Source: Podarcis cretensis (taxonomy: Eukaryota). Taken from it: 64,000 bases of DNA. Position 1 is the first letter of the stretch. Every line of letters starts with the position of its first letter. The translations under genes were made by a program, and so were the position numbers. The DNA lies in contig OX638166.1 of the NCBI GenBank assembly GCA_951804945.1, forward strand, positions 38,750,001-38,814,000, given 5' to 3'. The notes beneath the pieces were generated by a model. The model was given only the letters and a program-made list of their open reading frames with translations. It made no database searches and was not told where the DNA came from. Shown in pieces: positions 15,601 through 64,000 of the stretch.

Positions 15601-18600
15601 CTCCGGAATGAATTAAGTTTGTAACCAGAGGTACCACTGTAGAGAGAAGGTAGAGCTGTGACCTGAAGCTTCTGCCTCCTTTCCTTGTCCTGGGTGTCAG
15701 AAGCTACATAGGCAGTTTCCTGCCCAGATGAGTTTTAATCAGATGAATCTTCACCTACTTTTTTTTCCCCCTCTGCAGGGAGCCTTACCCCAGTCAAACA
15801 GCTCTGCTGAGCAGAACCTTCCAGGTAATTTGTTCCCTTACTCTATGTCTGTATGGTGTCTTCTTCCCTCAGCTCAGCTGAAGCAGATGCTGTTCCTGGG
15901 CCCCCTGGGATGAGGTAGTAGATTGTATAGTTTTAGGGTCACACCCGGTCTTGGAGATAACTATACAATCTACTGTCTTTCCTATGAGGACTCGCAACTC
16001 GCCGTGCCAGCACTGAAGAAGAGAGAAGCCACTGAGAAACCACGCCTAGCTCAGGAGGAAAGAACATGGGCTCAAGAACGAAATGTGGAATCAAAGCCCC
16101 TGAGTTCCTTGGTTCCATCCCTAGATGTGGACAGAAATTTGGGGATGGGGGTTATAGTGGGATAGTTTGTCATTAGATCTTGTAGGTAGGATTCCCTGGA
16201 TCTTGCTGTGGCTTGGGGAGAGGATCGTCTACATGAGTGTTCTCCTCAGATCTATGTGAAAGGATTTTGCAGGATTTTTAAAAAACTAGCTGTTCAGATA
16301 GGGGAAGAACCAGTTGCCTGACGCTGAGGCTTTGTGACGTTGCTCCTGCTGGGGTGAGGTAGTAAGTTGTATTGTTGTGGGGTAGGGATTTGTGCCCCAA
16401 ATCAGAGATAACTATACAACTTACTACTTTCCCTGGGAGGAGTGAAGTACCCAGGACTGGGGTGGGTGTTTGATGTGCCCAGCTTTTGAACTAACCTTGA
16501 GGGTGCAGGGTGAAGCCAATTCCCTGCTTGAAATCCTGCTGCTGCTCAGTGGCCTGGGTTTTAAGACAGCCTCCCTCCCTCTCTTGGCTCCCAGATGGTG
16601 CTGCCCATCCTGATGGCTATCCCGCAGTCCCAGCTGCAGCTGAAGACACCTCTGCTGGCCCCAAGCAGACTCTGGTCACGCTGGAGAGCCCCCAACAGCA
16701 ACAGCAGCAGGTGACAGGGGCAGGCGAGCTTCCTTCAGAGCTGGCGGGGCAGTCCAATGCCCAGGGCTCTGGGCAGTTGTTGATGCCGGTGGAACAGGAG
16801 GACTCAGGCCCTGGGAGGCCAAGCACTGATGCTGAGGCCACACAGATGGAGCTTTCACCTGCTCCCACCATCAGTAAGTGGCCCCAGGCTTCACCCTGCA
16901 GCAGGTGTTACCCCCTTTCTGGCTGTGTGTCACTTGTACGTGCATAAACATACTCTGATTCCTACCATCTTCCACATGTTCAGGAGAAGGCAGCAATAGT
17001 TTTAAAGTGCATATATTTTCATCAGCCACCTACCTACTCAGTGGCCAGGAGCATCATAACTAGACACCAGAGAGAACATGAACCTGTGGTACCAAACCAT
17101 ATGGGAAACAGCCCTACTAGAGCAGCTAGCCAATAGACTGAAACTGACAGAGGGGCAAATAAAAGAGGACAGCTTCACCCCAGTGTGGCTCCCCTTTATT
17201 GCATACACAGCCCAACAAAACAAGAACCCACCAGCAGCATGCAAATCAATATGGCTAACTTGACCCTAACAACAACTCCACCTCATACACGCAAACAAAA
17301 CTCACTGCAGCCAACTGCCCTGCTCCCAACCTCTCTCGCCACCAATGAAAACTAATAAATGAATAGAAAGAGAACCTGGCCACGTGACGCTGACACGAAA
17401 ACCTTGCACATACGCTCTCCCCACTTCTCTTCTCCCCATGCCATATACTGTCTATAACATAAGTGTCTCGCATCGAGTATAACTGATCTATAGAAAGGGT
17501 CCTATGAATGGAAAGCAGAAATGCTGTATGCACTTTTGTAACCCAAGAAAATCTTTAATAAAAACAATTTTTAAAAAGTGCATATATTTGCAAATTAACT
17601 AACATTTGCAAAGTGAAAGTAAAAGCCTATGCACCCACCTAATGATTTGATCCTAGCTTTCAAAATTTGGCTGGATGTTTGTTTTTTAAGTAGCTTTTTA
17701 TTGAGGTTTAAGCTCAAATTTTGAATCTCTCATTTTTAAAAATAGAAATGCTGTGCTGGATCAGACCTGTCAATTGAAAGTCTTCACAGGCAATTTCTGA
17801 AGCCTGTCACTCTATAGTAGTTGGCAGTGAAGGGTATATCACAGCCAAAACAAGATGTTTCCTTGCTAAATTGGAACCAGAGCCCAGTCGTAATGGGCAG
17901 CAGAATTTGAACCCAGTGTATCAGGTTTTCAGGCAGTGTTTCTATCAATGCTTCTTAGGAAGGGTGTCTAAAAACCAAAAGGGGGTCAATGGGTAGGTTT
18001 CTGCCCTTACCATGTTTTGGGCTGAATCTGATGAAAAGAATTCAGGTTTGTCAGACTTATCTCTCAGTCCTTTCTTTCCTTTCCCACCAGCTTCACTTTC
18101 TCCAGAGAGGGCTGAAGACTCTGATGCCTTGACAGCAGTCAGCAGCCAGCTGGAGGGCTCACCCATGGATACCAGCAGCCTGGCCTCTTGCAACCTCGAA
18201 GAAGGAGTTGGAGAGGCTGGTGGCCCTAGCAATGTGGACCAGGCAGGGGGAGCCACTGTTGTAGCAACGGCAGACACTGCCCAGCAGGGCTCCAATGCAC
18301 AGGCCCTCAGGGAGGGCCAGCCAGATCCTAGCCAGCAGGTGGATGATGGGTAAGGAGCAGCGATGGGGTGCAAGGGGGTGATATGCCAATTTTAGCATTA
18401 GCACTGCACTTGCTAATACTGTCACTTCCTGCTCTTCAGCTCCCCACCTGCCTCATCTTCTGAGAGCTCCTCCACCAGAGATTCGGCGGTGGCCATTTCC
18501 GGTGCTGATTCTCGGGGCATCTTGGAAGAACCCCTTCCTTCTACCAGCAGTGAGGAGGAAGACCCCTTGGCAGGTAAATACTAGAAGAGAACATAAAAAG

Positions 18601-37512: not shown

Positions 37513-37700
37513 CTATGACTGTAGTTCAGTGGTAGAGCATCTGCTTTCCATGCAGAAGGTCCCGGGTTCAATTCCCAGCATCTCCAGGTAAGACTGGGAA
37601 TGTCGTCAATCTCAATATCTGGAGAGCCTCTGCCAGTCAGTGTAGGCAATACTGAGCTAGATAGACTAATGGTCTGACTTGGTATAAGGCTGCTTCTTGT
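37513..37700 (+). mobile_element. tRNA-derived SINE (Squam3-like); a more decayed copy lies at about 37270-37390
   Basis: tRNA-like head with A/B boxes (tagttcagtgg ... ggttcaattcc) followed by a non-tRNA body (ggagagcctctgccagtcagtgtag...aatggtctgacttggtataaggc). Confidence 0.75.
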
Positions 37701-46842: not shown

Positions 46843-47470
46843 CAAGTCAAGTCAAGTAACCTTTATTGGCATCCCATAAGAACATTCAGAATACATTTAA
46901 AATAGCTAGGCCAGTGCGATCTCGTCGCCACCCCAACAGCACAGTCACTCGCCAAAGGGCAGAAGAGGCAAGCAATCTGCCTCATCTCTGTGGGTTTCCA
47001 GCAATCCTGTAGCATACTTTGGCGACAAAAAATCAAATAGAGGAACTTAGCTACTGTCTTGGTGAGCTCCTGGTCTCTCCCCTGTAATAAGAAGCGCATG
47101 ACCTCCGTCTCTGGTTTCCATGTTGGAATACATAGATGGTCTAGAAATTGTTGGCGGAGATCATCATACATTTTACAGTTAAGGGCCATGTGAGCTAGAG
47201 TTTCCACCAGGTGGGCATCGCATGGGCAGATCCTATCTCCTTCTGCCAAACCTGCAAACCTGCCCCAAAGGAGGTTAGAAGGATTAGAATTGAACTTGGC
47301 CAGTGAAAAGGCCCTTCTTTCTTGTAGATTAAACAAAAATTGTAAGTAATTAAGATTAAATTCCTGCGCCCAAGAGAGTCGAAAATAAAAAGGAGGGCAT
47401 GTTTTTTCCGCAGCTGAGATTAGTTCCTGGCGATCTATGTCCCACAGCCTAGTTTTTAACATGGTCTTTG
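46843..47470 (-). mobile_element. LINE 3' fragment, RTE-X-like, with Cys/His knuckle
   Basis: Open frame ...RICPCDAHLVETLAHMALNCKMYDDLR...; minus-strand AATAAA followed by a (CTTGA)n tail. Confidence 0.7.
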
Positions 47471-48628
47471 GCAAACTGGGAAAGCCACAGCGCCCAGGAT
47501 ATCCTCTGAAACCCGAGTTCCTGTATCTTTGTGCAAAACAGTTGTAGCCCTGGGGAAAGGAAGGAGTCAGACAGAATGCTAAACACATTTAAAGATGGAA
47601 TCCTGCATCATAGGCATGGAGTCACATTGAATTGAATGTGACTTACTTAGGAGACATGTATAGGATTGTTTGCATCCAGCACAGCTCTGTCCTGAGCATG
47701 AAGTGCCAGTTCTAAACAAGTCTCACATGCTGGATGTGAAGGGTAGAAAGAAGAATGTGCGTGTGTGTTTGTGTGTGTGTGTGTCAGAAGGATGACTTTC
47801 TACTCTTTCCCCTGTTGCCCTTTTGGAAGTCCATGATGAAGACTTGTCATCCACCACCCCATGAGATCTTTCAGCAATCTTTGCTCTGGTGTCCCGTTTT
47901 CCCTTTGCCACAGAAGCAACGTGAGGGTGGAAGCGGATCTAGCTAGACGGCGCACCCTCGTGAGACTTAAGCAGTCGAGGAATGCAATTATTTTGTCGCT
48001 GGAATTCAAAAGTATATTGGAATTTGAAGGGCAGCGCTTCCCCCATGTTCATGCACGTCCCCGTCCCCCCACTCCAGTCTGCTGGCCGAGGACAGAAACA
48101 CAAACATGTCTGCATCTTGCCTTCCCTTGCAAGATAGCCTCTGCCCCTAACTGGTCTGATCGTTCCGTTCCCAGTGAAGCAGCCATTCCTACGTCCTCAG
48201 ACGGTTCTGCTTGGGAAAACATATGTTGCTTCTTCATGAACCACGAAAAACACGAAGACAGTTGGGGCAGGCAAAATCTTTGAGTGCCAGTTCCTTCGTA
48301 GCCATCTTGAGGGCATGGAGTGCAAAGGCGCCCTCATGGAGAACAGCTTCATGGGGCCGACACCATCTTTTAAAGGGGCGAGGGGACAGATCCCTAGGCA
48401 GCTAAGGGAGGTGCTTGCTTCGCCACTCGCGGGAGGCCAAGTAGGAATGGCAGCTGTGGGGATGGTCGCCAGGGAAAGCACCCTGCGCTGATGACTCAAG
48501 GCCCTCTTTTGAACATTTTGGGTGGTCTGAGGGCAAGTTGAAGCGTGAGGGGAAAGCTGGCTTTGCCCACCTCACTGGCCCATGTGAAACATGACTTTCC
48601 TCATGGTGGCAGTCTGAGGGAAAAGCGG

Positions 48629-51186: not shown

Positions 51187-54100
51187 ATGGAGCTTCTCCT
51201 TGGGCTCTCTGCCCTTTTCCAGTTCTTTTTGTCCTCCTCCACCACCTGTAAGTGACCACAGTCAGAGCTAGCACACTTGAGTTCTGTTCCCCATGTTATG
51301 GGAAGCAGAAAGGCTTGTGCAACCCAGAAACTCTTTAGGATTAAGTGGTATAACTGAATGGGAGGTTTCAAGTACAGAACATTAGCCCCTGACAATGAAC
51401 TATGTATAAAGCTTATATTTTTAAAAAAGAAAAGGGTTCCATGTGGCGTTCATTTGCACAATCATTTGACTAACCTGTACCATATTGAGGGAGGGTGTGC
51501 AATACTGGTTTACATTAGAGGTTAACTTAAGAACTGGCCTGCAGTGTTGGTGAGCCATCAAAGACTCCTCCATTGGGGTTAACCACCACTCAATATCCAA
51601 AGCCCCAACTAAAGCATGTATTACACATTGTACCACAGTCAGGATGCAGGGAATAGGAGATCCTACAATAATAATAATAATAATAATTTATTTATACCCC
51701 GCCCATCTGGCTGGGCCTCCCCAGCCACTCTGGGCGGCTTCCATAGAAACCAAAAATACAGTAAAATCACACATTAAAAACTTCCCTGAACAGGGCTGCC
51801 TTAAGATGTCTTCTGAATGTCAGGTAGTTGTTTATCGCTTTGACATCTGCTGGAAGGGCGTTCCACAGGGCAGGCGCCACTACCGAGAAGGCCCTCTGCC
51901 TGGTTCCCTGTAGCTTTGCTTCTAGCAATGAGAATACAATATTCTACTGTTCCTCTGTAGTCTGTAGCATCCGGCATCCCTGGACGAATTGGGACAAGTC
52001 TCCCTCCCCAGAAGAGAGAGAAGCCCTGGAAGCACCATGGTTAGTGAACATATTTGGCAATGGCAAAAGGTGCCAAGGAGTTGTCCTGAGCAGCTGGTGG
52101 GTCCTGACAGCAGCCAACTGTTTCCTACTGATGTGAGTAATGTGAGAGATTGGAAGTGCTTTTCTCCTGATGGAGTGCTAGCTCTGGTCCTAAGATGGTT
52201 GGTTCTGAAATGAAACAGAGTGCCTGAACAATGAACAGGCTGTTGTGGAGTAAGGTCTCACCATTCAGGATCTGATAGCTATGGTTGATTATAAAATGAC
52301 CTTCCATGTTTGCCTTGCAGGCAGCCGAGCAATGTAGAATTCACTGGTGCCCATGGACGTTTCAGCACCAAGACAGTGAGCCAGTTCATTTCACACCGTG
52401 GTTTCAGTTCTTGGGATGCACCACCCAACAATGACCTGGGACTCATTCTGCTCGGCCAGCCAATTGATTTAAGGAAGCCAGACATATGGCCAGCTTGTGT
52501 CATTCGGAAAGAAAAACCCTATGACACACAAGAGGAATGTAGGATTATTGAGCGGAGACACGACGGTGAGTTTGGAGGTGCCCTGTCAAGGTCTGAGGGG
52601 GTTGTGCGGAAAGTGACCACAGCCCAGAGTCAAAGTCATAGGTACTAATAAGTCTGCAAGTTATTTAAAAAGACTAAGTGTATGTGTCACATCTGTTAGA
52701 ACCACTATACTCAACTAGTATGTATTTGGCCCATAGTTTAATATATTGAGAGTGTTGGGGTGATTATTACTCAGTTATATTATTGTATAATTATATTATT
52801 ATATAATTATATAAATTATATATCTTAGGGCTATGGAAACTTTAGAAAAAATATGGTCAGCGAAGGCTTAGAAGTTAGAGAAGGCTATGTAGGAGAATTT
52901 GATTTTTTTTAAAAAACGCATGCACACACACGCACGGCACTGAGACTGATCAGTGCTGGAGTGGATCCCTAGAGTTTGGCTAACAGGCCTTGCAGTTTAT
53001 AGTCATCTCTCCTTCTTCACAGGGTCCTTCAGATGGTCAGTGAAGGAGATCATTGTGCATACTTTGGTGACATCGGAATGTGCCAAGCAATGGCCTGACG
53101 TAGGCAAATCATGGAACTTGTGTGTTTCAAGAGAGGCGTCTAATGACACAAACTGCATGGTAATCCCTTATGAATGGATTCAGGGTTGATTGTGTGAATG
53201 GACACACACAAACACACACACACTTTACACCAACCCTAGTAAAGGTGTTGCGGCGCTCATCTCACTTTACTGGCCGAGGGAGCCGACATTTGTCCACAGA
53301 CAGTTTTTCTGGGTCATGTGGCCAGCATGACTAAGCCGCTTCTGGCGAAACCAGAGTAGCGCACAGAAATGCCCTTTACCTTCCCGCCAGAGCGGTACCT
53401 ATTTATCTACTTGCACTTTGACATGCTTTCGAACTGCTAGGTTGGCAGGAGCTAGACCTGGCCACAGAAAACTCTTCCCGTTGATCACGTTGGGGAGGAG
53501 GGATTGAACAATGGCCACTTGCACATCATTTTTTGTCCAGACCACATCTCCACAGCAGAGTATATGGGGTGCTTTCTGGTAATGGGGTGGATATGGGGTG
53601 ACTCACTCATCAACCCATCACAGCTCATTACCATTTGTATATAAATCCCACACAGGGAGACCAGATAATAGGGTGCACAGCATGTGTCTGTATTTCTCTG
53701 ACATCATGTTCTACACATAAGGCTCACAAAAGGGAACCTTGGTCATGGGAAACAGGTAGAAAGGGTACTTTGTACAGAGAAGAAGCCTCTTGTACAAAGC
53801 AACGTGTCTCCAGAACAACCCAGGAGTTTAAGCATTGCTAACATTTCTTCTCTTCCTGGATCCCTTGCCAGGTGCCTTTTCTCTAGCAAATGGGGCACCA
53901 GGACAGAGTACTTCACACAATGCTATTGTTGTTGTCATATCTCTTTACATTTTGGGGTCCTTGTTCAAAATTCAAAAAGGCAGCTCCATATGAGAAGGGC
54001 AGCACTTCCCTCATACTTCAGCAACGGCCAGCAAATTGTGATTCTGTATTCCAAACCAACTCTACCTCATCAGTTCTCTAGTGAGTGCCCATTCTATACT

Positions 54101-56299
54101 TCCCTTTTCTAGTCACCATTTTGTATATGTGGGAAGTTAGATCTGGTCTTATACTATTTGATAGGACCAATGTGATTAGAAAGGAACTACAGTCAGCAGA
54201 GGGGAAGGGAAGATTGGCCAAGGTTTGGAAATACCAGAATTCTAATGGGATTTTTTTTTTTAAAGTGTGAGTGTATAGGACACCAACAAACATTACCAGA
54301 AAGCACAAATAGTTATGTAGGAGAAATGAAGGGCGGGGATGAAAGGGACACCTTTTCTTCATTCTGGACACATCCTGTCATGTTTCACCTGCTGGTGCGG
54401 ACAGGAAACAGCACAATCAAACAAAATAATTGCCTCTTCATGCCAACTGCAGCATAGCTGAGGAGCTGGAAAAAAACTAACTGAGCTCCTATACTTCCCA
54501 AGAGGCAGCCTTTCTTACTGCTTTTAGTGGCACAGACCCTTTTTTTATCATCTGCTTTAGTTGTCTCATTCCATATCTGATTATCATGCTCTCTTTTCTG
54601 CTACAGGTGTCTGTAGGCAGTCCTGTGATTTGTCGTGACCCTGGCAGCGGGCACTGGGAGGTGATGGGTGTTGTGTCCCAGAGCTTACACGACTGCACAG
54701 CTCCTATCCTGGCTTCTCAGATTTTATCCCATTTGAAGTGGCTGAGTCAAGAAGGAGCACTTGGTCTGCAACTGAAAGATAGCGAGACCACTAATGGTGA
54801 ATTGTCTCCCCCAGCAATCACACCATTATATGCTCTGTCTGAAACAGAAGGAAAATTATCTTCAACAGCTGGAGAATCTGTAACATTCCCAACAGGCAGA
54901 GTATTCACATCAACAGCACAAACAACCACACAAGTCCCACAAGCGTCTATAACACCCCCAATTGTGGAACAAGAATCTGAAGCATCTGAAGCAGTTGGAC
55001 CTGTTGAACCATCAGAAGTAGCTTTGACAACCAACCCCCCACTGTTGGATTCTACCTTTACAAATGAACTCTCATCGCCAGAAGCTACAAAACCATTGAC
55101 TGTAATACCTACAGCTTCAGTGCACTCTACATCTGCACTCAATAGACTACAGTCAGTAGTCACAATAGTTGCAGCAGATAATCATGTAAATTTTACAACA
55201 TCCACAACAATTCAGAAAACATCCACAACAACACAGTCCCTCCCCAATATCACAACACCCCATGTAACACTTACAACTACCAGACACTCCCCATTTTTAT
55301 CATCTTCAACAACTGGACAGACATCTACAATGGCCAGAGAAACATCTTCTGTAATGTCTTCCACACTTGAACATCTATCTTCTGCAACATCTACAATAGC
55401 ACTAAAATTCACAACAGTGCAGAAGTCATCCACAACAGCAGGGCATTCGTCCACAACAACAGGGCAGTCGTCCACAACAGCAGGGCAGTCGTCCACAACA
55501 GCAGGGCAGTCGTCCACAACAACAGGGCATTCGCCCACAACAACAGGGCAGTCGTCCACAACAACAGGGCAGTCGTCCACAACAGCAGGACAGTCGTCCA
55601 CAACAACAGGGCAGTCGTCCACAACAGCAGGGCATTCGTCCACAACAACAGGGCAGTCGTCCACAACAACAGGGCATTCGCCCACAACAGCAGGGCATTC
55701 ATCCACAACAACAGGGCAGTCGTCCACAACAGCAGGGCATTCGTCCACAACAACAGGGCAGTCGTCCACAACAGCAGGGCATTCGTCCACAACAACAGGG
55801 CAGTCGCCCACAACAACAGGGCAGTCGTCCACAACAACAGGGCAGTCGTCCACAACAACAGGGCAGTCGTCCACAACATCCTCTACAACCAACCAAATAT
55901 CTGTAACATCCACAATACCCTCAACAGAAATGTCAGCTGTTGTACAACCACACATAATAATAATACCTGCTACCACTTCACAGCCACAAACGCCTCCTTC
56001 AACAGCCGTAGCATCCATACCAGACACTTACATCAACCAAGGTGCTCCTGTTCATATTGTTGTAGCTAGGCCACAGTTCCCCAAGAGTAAACGCGAGGAA
56101 GGCCCATCTCCTGGCCCTTCCCTAGCATTACTTGCCCCACCTAGTGTAACCATAATGCCCAACTTGCAACTCCCTGTACAGGTGACGCTGAAACAGTGTG
56201 AGATGGGATTGGCATGGGATGCCAACTCCCATACCTACCAACTTAACAAGATGGCAGTTCTTATGGATCGCAAATTTGGTGAGTACATGTACTCCCCAC

Positions 56300-56354
<55 letters not shown>

Positions 56355-58239
56355 GGGGGAGATCTGAGGAACTGTTATGTGTGTGCCACCAGTTGCTCCC
56401 TCATCATTCTGTCAGGAAATAGACTGTACTGGATAATATTACTTCAGACTTCTGTTAGATAAACTGAGAACTGAAGGCAAGCAAATTCATTTCTAATATG
56501 TTGGTCTTTCCGTTCAGGATGTGGGCTGCGGCCTGGTTTTGTGCCCAAATGCCCAAGCTGCTCTGAGGCTGAGTTGGGGGAATTTCCCTGGGTTGTTGCT
56601 CTCAAGCTGCCCATCCAGCATTTCTGTGCTGGCTCCATTCTCAACCCCTGGTGGATTTTAACCTCAGCCAACTGTGCCAACCTTATGTAAGTATCCTGTT
56701 ATTCAGGTTGATCTAGTTCAAGATGGGTGCATTGTCTTGGTCTCTCTCTCTCCCTCTCTCTCTCTCTCTGCATTTTCAATTTTACAGTACACCATACACA
56801 TTTTACCTTATACTATTTTTTTACAGACTTCCCAACCTAACCTTCAGTGACATTAACAGAATCTTAGTTTGCTGCATTTCCGTTGTTTTCTACACCTTAT
56901 TTTAATTCTACCAATTCCTTCGTTTTATTTTACTGTTGTTCAAACAGTTGATTGCAGGCCAGTTGTAATATCATTTCTTTTTAGGTACTCTCTGAAATAT
57001 TCCCACTCAGCCCTTGTCCTCTCTTCATCACAATCCCTTATTTTAGAAGTCATGCTTGCTAATTCTGCAAACTGTCAGTTTATCGAACAATTGCTTTTCT
57101 GTTCGAATAGCTTTGTCTTTCCAAATCTTTGCATACATAATTCTTGTAGCAACTGTGGCGTATAAAAATATGTTACACACCTTTTTTGGTAGCTCCTCTC
57201 CTATGATGGCTAGCTGGAAGGCTTCAGGTTTGGGGGGGGGGAAGGTGAATTTAAACATTTTTAAAAATTCTTCATAGACCATCTCCCAATATTTTTTGAT
57301 TGCTTGCAAGGCCACCACATATGTGTTAGGGATCCTTCCTCCTCTGAGCATATCCAACAGAGTTTAGAGCCCCTTTTGTACATTTTGATGAGTCTTGTGG
57401 GCATCAGGTACCACCTATACACAATTTTTAATATATTCTCCTTCATCTGATAACAAGCTGAAAAATTAATTTTTCGGTGCCATACATGGCATGGCAACAG
57501 CAGAAGGGAGGGGGGGGGACAGAATATTATAAATAAAATCACAGTGCTAGACCAAAACTCTAAAGATATAAGGAATGAATTTCAATGGTTTTACTCAAAA
57601 CTGTACATTTATCTGCCCTGAATCCTTCAACATTCAGCTTCCCTGGATGTCTCAAAGTTCTAGTGTTATGAAACACCATCCACTCTCTCCATTGTTTTAT
57701 TCATTTCTATCATGCCTCCTCCTACACATCTTTTTTTAAACTAAAAAGTCCCAAAAAGCTCCTATCAGCTTTCCTGATAGGAGAGTTGCTCCATCTCCTT
57801 GATGATTTTGGTTGCCCATTTCTGAACCTTTTCCAGCTCTACAATAAATACTCTTTTTGAGCTGTGGTGACCAGAACTGTACACAGTATTCCAAAGGTGT
57901 TTGCACTATGGCTTGAATAACTGCCTTGTGATATCAGCATTTTTATTTTCAAGTGGAATTTACCTTTCCACAGCTGCCACACATCTTCATCAAGCTATCC
58001 ACTATGACCCCTGGTTTCGTTACTGGTCAATCACCACCACTTTGGAGCCCATGAGCGTATAAGTCAAATGAAGTTGTTGTTGTTTGCCCATGTAGACATT
58101 TGCATTTTCCATTTTACTTTGAATTGCATTTGCCATTTTACTGCTGTTCACTCTTACAAAATATATTGCTGTCCCAAGCACCTGTTTGCTACCAGTATCG
58201 CATCCATTTTAAAAAGCTGAATTTTATGGTATTATTATT

Positions 58240-58281
<42 letters not shown>

Positions 58282-61200
58282 ATTTTATACTGCCCTTCTT
58301 CCTAGGATCACAGGGTGGTTGACTAGCATGCTAGAACAGTATGCATTTTTATCCTTCCCAGTGATTTCCAGACTTTTGCTGAGCTGTGCCTTAAAAAGTT
58401 ACCCAGCTACCACATTGGAACATGTATTCATCATTCTGTGCCCACTGAAGTAGGAAGTCCTTATGTAGCATTAATAACCTTCCCACCCCAAATATATGTC
58501 ATTTGTTTTACATGCTGTGCAGGTGTTATGGGGCCACAGAAGCACATTTTATTTGATTGCATTTTATATCAAGTTCACAGTTCATATAATAAAAGTTCAA
58601 ATAACAACAGTATCTACAATAGAGTGCTTAATACCTGCTTCTGCAACATGTTGCGTGTGGTTGCTGAAACTATTATGCTGCTGTATCTCTGTTTCAGAAA
58701 AAAATCAGAAGCTTTGGCCCTGGTGCAGGCTGGTCTAGTTGACATCTCCAAGGCAACGTACTCAGTGCAGACCCGCCAGTCTCTGACACACCCAAACTGG
58801 TTGGAGCACAGGGACCTTCACAACCTGGGCCTTTTGCAATTGGAGGAGCCACTGGAATTTGGTCCCTTTGTTGCACCTGTGTGTCTCTCAGACAAGGCAG
58901 ATGCAATAGGTGACTTCAGAAATTGTTGGCTACCAGGCTGGTCTGTGCTGGAAGGTGAGTGGTGCACTTGCTTCCTGCTTGTACACTGTGATCTGAATTG
59001 GCTCTCTTAAATGACCTTGTTGGTTCTTCCAGTCTCTGTGATTCTGTAAGCAAGATTGCATATCAGTTAGTAGTTAGGGTACCCAGAAAAGATACCCAAG
59101 AGAGATAAGTCTGTTTGGTTTTGTGCAGTGCCCTCTCATGAAATGATGCATGAAAGGTATAATGCCAGTGTTACATCACTCTTGCAGACAGCCAAAGAGC
59201 TGGCTTGCTGTTTCAGATAAGTCTGAGAACATCAACCTTCCACAGCTCATGTTCATGGACACTCCTGTCCATTGTCCACTCTCTATCCCAACATTCCTTT
59301 TCTTTTGCCCTGGTCTGGACTCTTCTCTTAATTCCTCTTGCCCACTTCAACTTCCAGCCCTCCTGTTCCCATCTGCTCACTTTCTTTATCCTACTATAGG
59401 GGTGGGGAACTTGCAGTACTCCAGTTGCTAAGGGACTCCAACTCCCACTGGCCTTAGCCAACATTGTCAAAGGTCATGTATGATGGGAGCTGTAGTCTGG
59501 CAACAGCTGGAAGGCGAAAGGATCCTCATCTCTGTGCCCTGCCATATCCTCTTGTGAGCCCTACTGGTGGTCATCACTGAGGGCCTGGAGATGGTTTTAT
59601 GCTGCCTAACTTGAGGGCAGATGGTGCTACCCCCATGTGTTCTCTCCCTGCTGTAGGAGGCCCTGCCGTGCTGCTGAGACATCCCTTAGACATCCTGAGC
59701 GTCACCAGCTGCGACCAGCTTGGAGAGCAGCTCTCCAATGCCATATTCTGTATCAAGGCTCAAATGGGCCGGGAAGGAGTCTGCACGGTGAGAGAGAGCT
59801 TGGGAGTAGATCATCATTATGACCCACCTCCACCGCTTTTTGACTCGGCGCTGATATCAGCTGGGTGTGGATTTAAAAAGTCAGTCTCCTTGCCCATTTG
59901 TTAAACTGAAGAGGTTAAAAGACATAATTCCTGCCTGCCACACATAGCTCTTTCGGGTGTACAACAGCACCTAGATATTGCATGTTCTCTGTCTCTGTCT
60001 CTCTGTCTCTCTCATACTGCTATCATGAATCCAGTAGATGGGTATTTACAAATTAGCTTGAGACATGGTTTGCATAGAGGCGGCATGTCAAAACAGGAGG
60101 TGCCGCCTTGCCCTGCCACTGCCGCCACCATACCTGCTGCCACCAGCAGCAATTTTGGGTGAGATATCACTGAAATTGCTCAAGATTGTGCATGTTCCAC
60201 AAGGTCTTGCAAAATTTCGGATGTCATTTCAGCCAAAATCGGCACCAATACTAGCGCCGTTTCTGTGCCAGCAGTGGGGCAGGTGGGGCACCTGCAGGGC
60301 TAAAGCCTTGGGGGCTCCTGCTGTTTGAGACAGCCACTGAGCCAGCTCTAGCATAAAGTGCCCCACAGAAAGGAGGTCAACTGCTGTTTGAAAGAGTGTA
60401 ATGGTTGGGAAACTTCTTTTGTACCTACTTCTCTTTCTCATTTTCTCTTCCTTCTCCCTCCTCCTGTCCAGGGTGATGTGGGCTCTCCGCTGATCTGCCC
60501 TGACCCCCAGGGTGGGGGCTGGCTTCAGCTGGGGGTGCTGAGCAGTTTTGATGAAGCCTGCTCTCGCCCCTATGTCTTCAGCAGTCTGCCCCACTACCTG
60601 CCCTGGCTGGAGAGGACCACAAAGGTTGCAGGGTATCGTTACAATCGCACAGTTCCTTGGAAACATCTGAGGCCTACAAAAAATCTTAGGCAGCTACAGA
60701 AACCAGAGAGTGAGTGATAGCTTGGAATTTCTCATGTGAGCTGCTTCAAAACACATGTCCCTTCTCCCCCAGGTCACTGTGGCCTGTACATAGGATGGCA
60801 CAATGCCTTCCAGAGCACCTCTGACAGGAATGGCATTCCATGTACATTTCCTGCTGTTTAGAGTTAGCCTCCCTCGCTCTGCTATTGTCCTCTCCCCCAC
60901 CACACACTGACCCAGCCTCTTTGCCCGCTTCAGCCCTGGCTGCATGGATCTCAGCACAAGTGTCCTTGCCCTGGCAAGTGCTCATCGCCACATGTGAGAA
61001 TCAGAGCTGCGGGGGCTCAATTCTGAACCGCTACTGGGTGTTGACTACAGCACAGTGTGTTCAACAGACGTAAGTGATGCCCCCATTCTCGTGGCCTCCT
61101 TCAGAATCAGTGTCAAATGGGAGAAGCATGGTGGGCCAACTTGGACCCACAGGCTAGAGGTTCTCTAGCCCTGTGTTAGGAGATTGGAGCCCATGCCCTT

Positions 61201-62960
61201 TGGGGGACTCTAGTTCATTATCAGTACAGTGGTACCTTGGGTTGAGAACTTAATTCGTTCTGGAGGTCTGTTCTTAACCTGAAACTGTTCTTAACCTGAA
61301 GACCACTTTAGCTAATGGGGTCTCCCAATGCCGCTGTGCCACCGCTGCACGATTTCTGTTCTCATTCTGAAGCAAAGTTCTTAACCCAAGGTACTATTTC
61401 TGGGTTAGCGGAGTCTGTAACCTGAAGCGTCTGTAACCTGAGGTACCACTGTATTCACCCATTCCGTGCTACATGTTAGGGTAGGGAGACATTTCATTAC
61501 CGGGTGAATGTGAAAGAGGCACACCTATTTTGTTCACCTAGGCTGTAGGACATGGGTAGGCAAACTAAGGCCTGGGGGCCAGATCCAGCCCAGTTGCCTT
61601 CTAAATCTGGCCTGCGGATGGTCCAGGAATCAGGGTGTTTTTACATGAGTAGAATGTGTCCTTTTATTTAAAATGCATCTCTGGGTTATTTGTGGGGCAC
61701 AGGAATTTGTTCATTTTCCCCCCTCCAAAATATAGTCTGGCCCCCCACAAGGTCTGAGGGACAGTGGACCGGCCCCCTGCTGAAAAATTTGCTGACCCCT
61801 GCTGTAGGATATAGCTGCTCAGAGGACATACAGGAAAGGGAGATGGCTGTACTCCACAACATGACCGATGAGCTCGGATAACATGAACAGAAGCAAGAAA
61901 AAGGCCCAGATTAATTTTAACATGGGTCAACATCAAGTTTACCATAGTTTATGAAGGAGTTGTTACTTTGAATAAACTATATAAACATAGCTGACCCTGC
62001 TGCCTGGCCTGTCCCATCATTATGGGTCCTAAAGGTCCAGTCGTGGCCGACTCTGGGGTTGCGGTGCTCATCTCACTTTATTGGCTGAGGGAGCCGGCGT
62101 ACAGCTTCCAGGTCATGTGGCCAGCATGACTAAGCCACTTCTGGCGAACCAGAGCAGCACATGGAAATGCCGTTTACCTTCCCACCAGAGTGGTACCTAT
62201 TTATCTACTTGCACTTTGACATGCTTTCGAACTGCTAGGTTAGCAGGAGCAGGGACTGAGCAACGGGAGCTCACCCCATCGCAGGGATTCGAACCGGTGA
62301 CCTTATGGGTCCTACCAAGAGCAAAAAAAATGAAGAACAAGAGACTATTCCCTGTTAGTGATGGCTAGTGCCCATTTGGGACTGGTAGGGTGGGAAGCAG
62401 GGAGGCCACAATGGAGTTGGAGTCAATAACAGCCAGCGCCAACTGATTCTAGTTTTGTCCCCATCCTGGTCCCTGCGGAGTTCTGCAAGGGCAACACAGA
62501 GACTAAGGAGGAGGAAGAAGCAGACGGCCAGTGCCATCACCTGAACTGGTTGTAGCTAAGAAGGCAGGTGGGTAGGGGCTCAGGGCAGACTGAGGTTGGT
62601 GGGGCAGTGCCCCATTTGCCTTAATGGACTAGCCTACACTATTCTCTTTGCCTTGTTGCTTTTCCTTTGACCCAAAACAGAGTTATTCCAGGCCCCTCTT
62701 TACTGTTTGCAGGGACCCAGCAAACATAGCTGTCTTTGTGAGGCTGACACAGCCCAAGGGCCACGCCAGAGGCATCCATGTTGCTGCAATTTACCCTTAT
62801 GAGGAGACGGCGCAGTACAGTCTCTCTGGCAGCTCCAACGTGGCTCTGCTGCTCCTCCAGAAGCCCATCGCCTTTGACCAACATGTGGCTGCTATGGCCT
62901 ACTTCCCAAAGGAGCCCTGGGATAGCTGCAAAGTGATGGGTCTACAAATGATGCAATCTG
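51187..62960 (+). CDS. Secreted multi-domain inactive trypsin-fold (S1) protease homolog with a mucin-like stalk; 3' incomplete
   Basis: Exons: 51187-51247 (ATG in AGGATGG context; MELLLGLSALFQFFLSSSTT), 51961-52132, 52321-52565, 53023-53159, 54607-56278, 56518-56686, 58698-58954, 59657-59787, 60472-60709, 60934-61069 (acceptor uncertain; 60862 and 60916 are also in phase), 62713-62960. All introns are GT-AG, phases 1-2-1-0 repeat for each domain, and the 3466 nt stay open. S1 motifs present: PW, CxGxxLxxxWVLTAAxC, xxGLLxL, GSPxIC, WL. Confidence 0.85.
51667..51915 (-). mobile_element. L2 LINE 3' end inside intron 1 of the pseudoprotease gene
   Basis: Minus strand reads RAFSVVAPALWNALPADVK...FRRHLKAALFREVF and ends in an (ATT)n tail. 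A related 3' end is at about 3335-3420. Confidence 0.8.
51961..54750 (+). CDS. Pseudoprotease domain 1
   Basis: EAPWLVNIFGNGKRCQGVVLSSWWVLTAANC (His57->Asn), NNDLGLILL (Asp102 kept), CM|VSVGSPVIC (GDSGGP replaced; Ser195->Val). Confidence 0.85.
53243..53455 (-). mobile_element. Sauria SINE fragment
   Basis: Reverse complement of the SINE core (ggtacctatttatctacttgcac). Confidence 0.85.
55441..55881 (+). repeat. Coding minisatellite: 21 units of 21 bp encoding G(Q/H)S(S/P)TT(T/A)
   Basis: Consensus GGGCAGTCGTCCACAACAACA, in frame inside the 1672-bp exon 54607-56278. Confidence 0.95.
56518..60709 (+). CDS. Pseudoprotease domain 2
   Basis: CGLRPGF...[37 protein letters not shown] (His->Asn), HNLGLLQL (Asp->Asn), CT|GDVGSPLIC (Ser->Val), YLPWL. 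Confidence 0.88.
56770..57480 (-). mobile_element. L1-like LINE 3' fragment
   Basis: Minus-strand peptide KIVYRWYLMPTRL...CWICSEEEGSLTHMWWPC (L1-clade C-terminal zinc knuckle), frameshifted. Confidence 0.75.
57610..58150 (-). mobile_element. CR1 reverse-transcriptase fragment
   Basis: gaccagaactgtacacagtattcca reads LEYCVQFWS on the minus strand. Confidence 0.65.
60934..62960 (+). CDS. Pseudoprotease domain 3 (N-terminal half)
   Basis: LPWQVLIATCENQSCGGSILNRYWVLTTAQC (His->Gln), SNVALLLLQKPIAF (Asp->Asn). The Ser-motif exon is not seen. Confidence 0.8.
61227..61451. mobile_element. Tc1/mariner-type MITE
   Basis: ta-CAGTGGTACCT ... AGGTACCACTG-ta: perfect TIR ends with TA duplication. Confidence 0.85.
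61551..61801. mobile_element. hAT (Charlie-like) MITE
   Basis: 8-bp TSD CTGTAGGA (61543-61550 and 61802-61809); imperfect TIRs catgggtaggcaaac / tttgctgacccctg. Confidence 0.8.
62033..62300 (-). mobile_element. Sauria SINE
   Basis: Reverse-complement core and B-box (ggattcgaacc). Confidence 0.85.
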
Positions 62961-63176
62961 GTATGCCAGGAGACTGACTGGGAGTTGGGTGGAGGGAGAG
63001 GGAGAGAAGAGAGGGACCTTGCTATTGTATAGGGCTGTATGCTCCAAGACTATTTCAAACAGTCTCTGTTCCTTAACATCAAATATCCCTTAGTACATTC
63101 ATTTGGAAGCCCTGTGACGTTGCATCAAGTTGCTGCATGATTTGTGCAGGCAGCCAATGGAGCTTAATCTGGCTTT

Positions 63177-63315
63177 NNNNNNNNNNNNNNNNNNNNNNNN
63201 NNNNNNNNNNNNNNNNNNNNNNNNNNNNNNNNNNNNNNNNNNNNNNNNNNNNNNNNNNNNNNNNNNNNNNNNNNNNNNNNNNNNNNNNNNNNNNNNNNNN
63301 NNNNNNNNNNNNNNN
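63177..63315. other. Assembly gap (139 N)
   Basis: Run of N. Confidence 1.
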
Positions 63316-64000
63316 AGGATCAGCTGTGCTGAGTGGAAGTGGACAGTCCTTGAAGACACACCCAACAGGGAGACATCTACTCTCCAAATCTATATTCCAT
63401 CAATCTTTATGCAATGGCCATGGCTACCTGCAAAGAATCCTGAGCATTGTAGTTTGGCAAGGGTGCTGAGACTTCTCAGCGATCTCTCATGGAGCAAAAA
63501 GTCCCCAGGGTTATCTGAGGAGAAGGAATGGCTATTAAATTAGTGCAAGTGTATCAGAAAGATGTTGAGAGGAACTCTTGACTGCCGCTGCCTCACGGCA
63601 CCTCTTGTGTCTCCCTAGTAACATTTGTTAAATGACATGTTACATGCCATCATCATGCACATTCCTCCTTGCAAACATCATCCAATGAAGTACAGTGAAA
63701 AAACACTGAAAGCAATGATGATATATCTCATGTCTTTTGTAGTTAAATGTTACCTGGCAGTTGCAGAGGGGACCATATGTCTGTGGTAACGTGTCCCTCA
63801 CAACATGTAAATTAGGCCCCGTGTTTATGGTGTAGATATGATGAAAGCATATGGCTAAAAGCGTAGGGAAGTGGTGGATTTTTCAGTGGTGCTAAACTAG
63901 ATTATTATTGTGGTGATGGAAGCAGAGGTGGGGTGAGGGCACAATTCCTGAGACAAATTAGTTCAGGATAAAATGGTGTGATTCAACGGACAAATGTAGA

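Follow-up and report, generated by a model that had tools for sequence, protein, structure and literature searches.

The gene considered here lies on the plus strand of a 64-kb stretch of DNA from Podarcis cretensis (64,000 nucleotides of contig OX638166.1, assembly GCA_951804945.1), which is called the window below and to which all coordinates refer. It is PRSSLYL, the lizard orthologue of PRSSLY, a real and expressed gene that has already been published, lizards included (Hughes et al. 2022, BMC Biol 20:133; PMC9178871). In an earlier note on the same DNA it had been taken for an unnamed gene, possibly restricted to non-mammalian amniotes. Neither view holds: it is named PRSSLYL in the anole (PMC9178871) and carries LOC annotations in other lizards, and orthologues occur in salamanders, caecilians, echidna, bat, dog and rat. 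Taken as a whole, the data are best explained by a PRSSLY orthologue whose trypsin-like domains are non-catalytic binding modules and which is tethered by a glycosylphosphatidylinositol (GPI) anchor on male germ cells or sperm, a reading that we regard as probable.

The orthologues were recovered with exon 7 of the gene, for which a full HMMER search returned multi-domain proteins matching the whole length of the exon. Among them are Varanus komodoensis LOC123029954 (1131 amino acids, 68 % identity to exon 7), Heteronotia binoei LOC132581843 (1325 amino acids), a "TMPRSS9-like" protein of Euleptes (922 amino acids) and a fragment from Phrynosoma, and, outside the squamates, proteins of Pleurodeles, Ambystoma, rat (Tmprss9l1), Rousettus and echidna. 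Three matching clusters contain the third-party annotation entries DAZ89702, DAZ89707 and DAZ89712, named "Y-linked serine-like protease(-like)". In a maximum-likelihood tree of 45 domains the first, second and third trypsin-like domain (D1, D2 and D3) each form one clade (support 100/96, 99/99 and 100/99), and the order of amphibians, squamates and mammals recurs within each of them. D1 and D2 of the window nest among the squamates; its partial D3 was left out as too short. This domain-by-domain tree makes the gene a one-to-one orthologue of PRSSLY, and orthology of this kind to a characterised gene is what the earlier note had listed as speaking against its own reading. By the same tree the three-domain build is older than the split of the living tetrapods. 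Among 189 proteins fetched, no other S1 protein exceeded about 32 % identity to the gene.

The position agrees with this assignment. Some 15 kb upstream, and likewise on the plus strand, stands the 3' end of HUWE1, where one exon corresponds to residues 4215-4281 of 4374 (E 2e-34) and the HECT domain was found. In humans HUWE1 is X-linked. Lizard PRSSLYL, on chromosome 1 in the anole, lies in a region syntenic with the human X (PMC9178871). Because the gene is placed just downstream of the X-linked HUWE1 and has named orthologues, it is therefore PRSSLYL.

PRSSLY is the only ancestral sex-chromosome gene that eutherians are reported to have lost from the X while the Y retained it; in these mammals it survives on the Y only, and in the lizards with chromosome assignments it is autosomal (PMC9178871). 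The gene of the window resembles it in sequence, domain tree, HUWE1-adjacent position and the succession of a long, fast-evolving exon and conserved trypsin-like exons, and homologues in anole, bearded dragon, gecko and lacertids, with testis-biased expression, are already listed there. Hughes et al. report "only one identifiable domain", and the main text contains neither "catalytic" nor "triad" (PMC9178871). In contrast, three domains are seen here, all of them catalytically dead, with D1 inside the "upstream open reading frame (ORF)" of the paper. The long, poorly conserved exon 5, which stands upstream of conserved trypsin-like exons, corresponds to this upstream ORF. In the supplement, the anole "domain" set shows the D2 motif EFPW...ILTTANCAN and the anole "upstream ORF" set the D1 motif APWIVNIFGNG..C (PMC9178871). 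The lizard mucin exon measures 1.67 kb, compared with more than 10 kb in some mammals. A literature search found nothing on Tmprss9l1 or on a Pleurodeles Y-linked serine protease.

Exons were delimited by splice-site scans in those reading frames that bear trypsin-like peptides. Eleven exons between 51187 and 62960 (plus strand), joined by a local script, give 3466 nt and 1155 codons with zero stops, and GT..AG borders are present at 10 of 10 introns. The rebuilt model agrees with that of the earlier note, which had proposed 11 exons in phase, at least 1155 codons and a hydrophobic leader; codon count and end coordinates match exactly. The parts of the gene are as follows.

Exon 1, 51187-51247, plus strand: ATG at 51187 and hydrophobic signal-type leader MELLLGLSALFQFFLSSSTT; 20 codons and 1 nt, phase 1; donor GTAAGT after 51247.
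Exon 2, 51961-52132, plus strand: "His" exon of D1 with propeptide-type Cys and TAANC (His57 replaced by Asn); Pfam Trypsin 25.7 bits, cutoff 20.6.
Exon 3, 52321-52565, plus strand: "Asp" exon of D1 with NNDLGLILL (Asp102 kept); 61 % identity to Varanus.
Exon 4, 53023-53159, plus strand: third exon of D1, matched by the Varanus protein in tblastn.
Exon 5, 54607-56278, plus strand: 1672 nt; end of D1 with CMVSVGSP (Ser195 replaced by Val), then a Ser/Thr/Pro-rich linker of about 490 residues up to D2.
Mucin core in exon 5, 55424-55878, plus strand: 21-nt tandem array, 21.7 copies.
Exon 6, 56518-56686, plus strand: "His" exon of D2 with CGLRP..., GEFPW and TSANC (His57 replaced by Asn); Trypsin 34.5 bits.
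Exon 7, 58698-58954, plus strand: "Asp" exon of D2 with HNLGLL (Asp102 replaced by Asn); the query that recovered the orthologues.
Exon 8, 59657-59787, plus strand: third exon of D2, with joints 58954/59657 and 59787/60472.
Exon 9, 60472-60709, plus strand: "Ser" exon of D2 with CTGDVGSP (Ser195 replaced by Val) and the short linker between D2 and D3.
Exon 10, 60934-61069, plus strand: "His" exon of D3 with TTAQC (His57 replaced by Gln); Trypsin 31.5 bits; joint 60709/60934.
Exon 11, 62713-62960, plus strand: "Asp" exon of D3 with SNVALL (Asp102 replaced by Asn); 63 % identity to D3 of Varanus; last exon in the window, model open at the 3' end.

The Varanus protein is collinear with all 11 exons at 47-83 % identity (tblastn), and the Pogona PRSSLYL cDNA BK059518 likewise has the MELLLGL... 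leader at its start, together with a 5' untranslated region (UTR) that is similar (PMC9178871). Intron phases 1-2-1-0 occur three times, which means that one S1 protease exon cassette was used three times. The cassette copies are old, equivalent exons of the three domains sharing 18-41 % identity. A tblastn search of 62961-64000 with the Varanus protein gave no further D3 exon. Intron 11 includes a run of 139 N (63177-63315), and the remaining exons of D3 lie either inside this run or beyond the window.

Database, family and fold searches were performed with single exons or with orthologue proteins, and the joined 1155-residue reading was used locally for the phase and stop check, BLAST, MAFFT alignment and the tree. 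With each exon scanned singly, Pfam Trypsin scores above the gathering threshold on exons 2, 6, 7 and 10; exon 9 reaches 12 bits only, exons 3, 4, 5 and 11 have no Pfam match at E up to 1 and exon 8 has only a spurious one. The domains become clear in whole orthologues only, since Pfam gives three Trypsin stretches in every full-length one. D1 alone, in a Pleurodeles fragment, matches Pfam Trypsin at 2.1e-21 over profile positions 4-218 of 220. This domain was found in newt, echidna and rat (strongly diverged in the latter) and was not detected in the bat PRSSLY protein models or in two caecilian models, which is either a lineage loss or due to incomplete gene models. Furthermore, a structure model of the gecko orthologue comprises an N-terminal helix, three beta-rich blocks (predicted local distance difference test, pLDDT, 60-87) with disordered segments between them and a C-terminal helix. 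All its Foldseek matches are S1 protease domains (template modelling score 0.65-0.76, about 230 columns, E about 1e-13). A single transcript encodes three tandem trypsin-fold domains, as the earlier note had proposed. The mucin core encodes heptads of the SSTTTGQ/H type with 62-64 % Ser and Thr, and Ser, Thr and Pro together make up 49 % of the whole exon-5 linker. The same note had spoken of a mucin stalk: the mucin-like segment exists, and it sits between D1 and D2 and not as a foot beneath all three domains.

The catalytic residues are lost to a different extent in each domain, in every case with the motifs named in the earlier note. His57 is substituted in all three (TAANC, TSANC and TTAQC), Asp102 is present in D1 (NNDLGL) and gone from D2 (HNLGLL) and D3 (SNVALL), and Ser195 is Val in D1 (VSVGSP) and D2 (GDVGSP). 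An R-IVGG activation site aligns in none of the three domains; the structural disulfide cysteines are retained. Aligned to two active references, the full His57-Asp102-Ser195 triad is found in 0 of 43 orthologue domains with readable sites from 18 species. In this alignment D1 keeps Asp102 alone and D2 no triad residue, and D3 is variable: eutherians have His57 and Asp102 together with Pro195, the echidna has Ser195 with Asp57 and Asn102, and squamates and amphibians have Glu at position 195. As the earlier note had claimed, no domain of the window has an intact triad, and at the Ser195 position of D3, which lies outside the window, all four other squamates examined have Glu. Since the residues of D3 differ between eutherians, echidna and squamates, D3 therefore lost its triad residues lineage by lineage. 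An inactivation older than the duplication of the domains does not agree with this, His57 and Asp102 being present in eutherian D3. It is a tentative proposal, which we hold a little short of likely, that the whole PRSSLY family is an obligate triple pseudoprotease (a D1 that had escaped notice, mucin segment, D2, D3, GPI-type tail) in which the D3 triad was perhaps still working in early mammals and was disabled independently by lineage.

Several known S1 proteins are comparable in part. The dead members PRSS37, PRSS54, haptoglobin, HGF, azurocidin and protein Z likewise keep a triad-less trypsin fold under selection; unlike the protein considered here, they have one domain, no mucin segment and no GPI-type tail. 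Dead S1 domains are known to bind partners, as in PRSS37, haptoglobin, HGF and protein Z, and PRSS37 acts in sperm. The polyserases (TMPRSS9/polyserase-1, PRSS36/polyserase-2 and PRSS53/polyserase-3) share tandem S1 domains, some of them inactive. In each of them one or more domains are still active, and none is known to contain a mucin insert; in PRSSLYL and its orthologues no domain is competent in any species examined. Orthologues are auto-named "TMPRSS9-like", "polyserase-2-like" or "serine protease 53-like", labels which are automatic best matches and no statement of orthology. In the same way mammalian PRSSLY fragments are auto-named "serine protease 55-like" or "52-like" in the databases, and all that a protein search with a D2 fragment of the dog brought up were further PRSSLY fragments so named, with no true PRSS55 among them. 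The kinship to the PRSS55/PRSS52 group that the earlier note had seen is borne out, PRSS55 being named as the closest paralogue (PMC9178871). PRSS55 is likewise an S1 protein, with testis expression and a GPI anchor (PMC6208766); unlike PRSSLYL it has a single domain and no mucin segment and is described as a chymotrypsin-like serine protease. Giant tandem-S1 proteins also occur in fish, with 4066 amino acids and 14 matched stretches in Lepisosteus, 1783 amino acids in Labrus, and 5350 amino acids with 17 His-type and 17 Ser-type active-site motifs in Tautogolabrus. These poly-proteases look active and fall outside the PRSSLY orthogroup (27-30 % identity).

In the orthologues of squamates, salamanders, echidna, rat, bat and dog the last 12-20 residues form a hydrophobic tail, with nothing after it. 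This tail looks like a GPI-attachment signal, so that membrane anchoring is more likely than free secretion. A signal of this kind, without a cytoplasmic tail, is typical of the GPI-anchored S1 proteins PRSS55, PRSS21 and PRSS8. On this basis the following mode of action is proposed. The leader takes the protein into the secretory path, where the repeat segment would be heavily O-glycosylated and stiffened by its O-glycans. The C-terminus would be exchanged for a GPI anchor, as in the paralogue PRSS55, giving a cell-surface tether with D3 and D2 near the membrane and the mucin segment holding D1 outward. The dead protease domains would serve as binding modules and cleave no peptide bond, and the protein would act mainly on male germ cells or at the sperm surface.

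The earlier note had instead favoured a multivalent protein without a name, secreted freely, that binds partners or acts as a decoy and may be confined to non-mammalian amniotes. A signal-type leader together with the lack of an internal transmembrane segment in 1155 residues would suit such a protein, GPI proteins are often shed so that a soluble form may exist, and non-catalytic binding is common to this proposal and to the explanation preferred here. However, named orthologues across the tetrapods, mammals included, refute the missing name and the taxonomic limit, and the hydrophobic C-terminal tail of the orthologues weakens the case for secretion. It is an improbable alternative, although the best placed of those considered.

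Selective constraint bears on another alternative, a transcribed but decaying gene, i.e. a pseudogene in the making. PRSSLY has been lost repeatedly, in birds, turtles, crocodilians, snakes, frogs and several mammals, and the upstream ORF has a Ka/Ks near 1 (PMC9178871); in addition, mouse knock-outs are fertile. Against decay stand the intact frame of 1155 codons in 11 exons, the conserved structural cysteines, the same splicing at high depth in relatives and a three-domain build kept since before the amphibian-amniote split. Ka/Ks of the trypsin-like domain is 0.001-0.31 (PMC9178871). The listed differences between the contigs and the window are 8 silent and 6 replacement (runs X1 and X2) and 8 silent and 9 replacement (X6), which gives crude pN/pS values of 0.23 and 0.35 (binomial P against neutrality 0.008 and 0.03). 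The three trypsin folds are under purifying selection, and decay is very unlikely.

These contigs come from public sequencing runs that were chosen because they contain about one fifth of the words sampled from a 10-kb stretch, approximately the share expected from the exons alone. Contigs of up to four runs from three organisms (X1 and X2 from organism A, X5 from B and X6 from C) were placed on 56100-62099. They differ from the window by about 2-3 % and are therefore from close relatives. The GT..AG joints 56278/56518, 56686/58698, 58954/59657, 59787/60472 and 60709/60934 are seen in X1, X2 and X6 and partially in X5, so spliced contigs confirm five of the ten junctions, from exon 5/exon 6 to exon 9/exon 10, and connect D1 and its mucin segment with D2, and D2 with D3. 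Depth is 110-160 in exon bins (X1 and X2) and about zero in most intron bins. Over introns 7 and 8 there are also unspliced contigs at 5-7x (58926-59684 and 59759-60132) with small indels relative to the window; these low-depth contigs represent pre-mRNA of the relatives or transcripts with retained introns. A single 878-nt contig spans exons 5, 6 and 7, a single 1153-nt contig spans exons 7 to 10 and 384 nt more, and a 1658-nt contig runs 1254 nt past exon 10, a length into which the remainder of D3 and a 3' UTR would fit, though not a fourth domain plus UTR.

The same contigs contradict the idea that D1 with the mucin segment forms one product and D2 with D3 another, from separate genes or transcripts. 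It could appeal to the treatment of D2 as "the" conserved domain (PMC9178871), to the bat models without D1 and to database entries that are single-domain fragments. Three runs have contigs in which exon 5 joins exon 6, exons 7 to 10 lie in one contig, there is no leader-bearing start codon between the mucin exon and D2, and the full-length proteins of Varanus, Heteronotia, Pleurodeles and echidna contain all three domains, all of which makes separate products as doubtful as decay; minor isoforms may exist beside the full-length transcript. Least credible of all is residual catalysis by one domain through non-canonical residues or through a D3 site working in the unseen exons. Single triad residues do survive, namely Asp102 in D1, His57 with Asp102 in D3 of eutherians and Ser195 in D3 of the echidna. 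Against such catalysis, D3 of the window has Gln57 and Asn102, D2 is without all three and D1 without His and Ser, Glu195 stands in D3 of 4 of 4 other squamates and no activation cleavage site exists.

For the site of action the literature on lizards and mouse is informative. In Pogona, testis shows 39.7 and 112.7 transcripts per million (TPM) compared with at most 1.1 in the other tissues shown, testis-biased expression is reported in two lizards, and in mouse expression peaks in round spermatids (PMC9178871). With the Pogona values the reproductive role that the earlier note had called possible becomes probable.

Some points weigh against the preferred reading of a GPI-tethered, non-catalytic binding protein of male germ cells. 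The exons bearing the D3 Ser195 position and the C-terminus are outside the window, and both are read from orthologues only. Hydropathy, the sole measure used for the tail, shows it in 10 of 12 orthologue C-termini, and in the gecko model it appears as the terminal helix; in the two caecilian models it is missing. The mean pLDDT of the gecko model is low (57.9), so that it informs on fold and domain count only. Junctions from exon 1 to exon 5 and that between exons 10 and 11 rest on Varanus collinearity and on the start of the Pogona cDNA, not on reads; that the runs are RNA is a guess, though spliced contigs with empty introns fit RNA, and their tissue is coded, the values for testis being those of Pogona. 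The pN/pS values take in 14 of about 17 and 17 of about 24 differences, namely those listed. The binding function is suggested by analogy with other dead S1 domains. Finally, of the studies on the fertile mouse knock-outs, one found a small female-biased sex ratio and a later one no change, and with an absent or small phenotype the gene may have a small effect.

Several observations concern the surroundings of the gene and its introns. The 3' part of HUWE1 fills 1-36000 of the window (plus strand), and one of its introns contains two let-7-family precursors 440 nt apart (15905-15985 and 16349-16436; 77.8 and 73.2 bits), probably the counterpart of let-7f-2/miR-98 in mammalian HUWE1. Between HUWE1 and PRSSLYL an Rfam tRNA match (37520-37580, plus strand, 46 bits, model positions 6-65 of 71) may be the head of a short interspersed nuclear element (SINE) or a tRNA pseudogene. 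None of the ORFs at 36-51 kb carries a Pfam domain; one of 241 amino acids at 46863-47588 (minus strand), also without Pfam match, resembles by eye the C-terminal part of a retrotransposon ORF2. In intron 10 an interspersed repeat (61100-62100) is covered by contigs from each of the four runs at a depth of 10^3-10^5, and loose ends are numerous there; it has the look of a transcribed SINE-like element of high abundance. The piece of 131 nt at 62147-62277 recurs in intron 4 (53349-53479) with 84 % identity.

Compared with the published description (PMC9178871), the three domains, the death of all of them, the GPI-type tail and the lineage-wise loss in D3 are possibly new. The build (three dead trypsin folds, mucin segment, probable GPI tail) argues for binding over cutting, and the lizard copy shows the original build of the protein without the degeneration of a Y chromosome. 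If these features are indeed unreported, work on this gene, "lost from X, kept on Y", would move from proteolysis to binding, and the published mouse alleles, which are cut near the 3' end, would leave D1 and the mucin segment intact. A conserved, folded D1 inside the "upstream ORF" thus matters for true null alleles and for the choice of partner baits.

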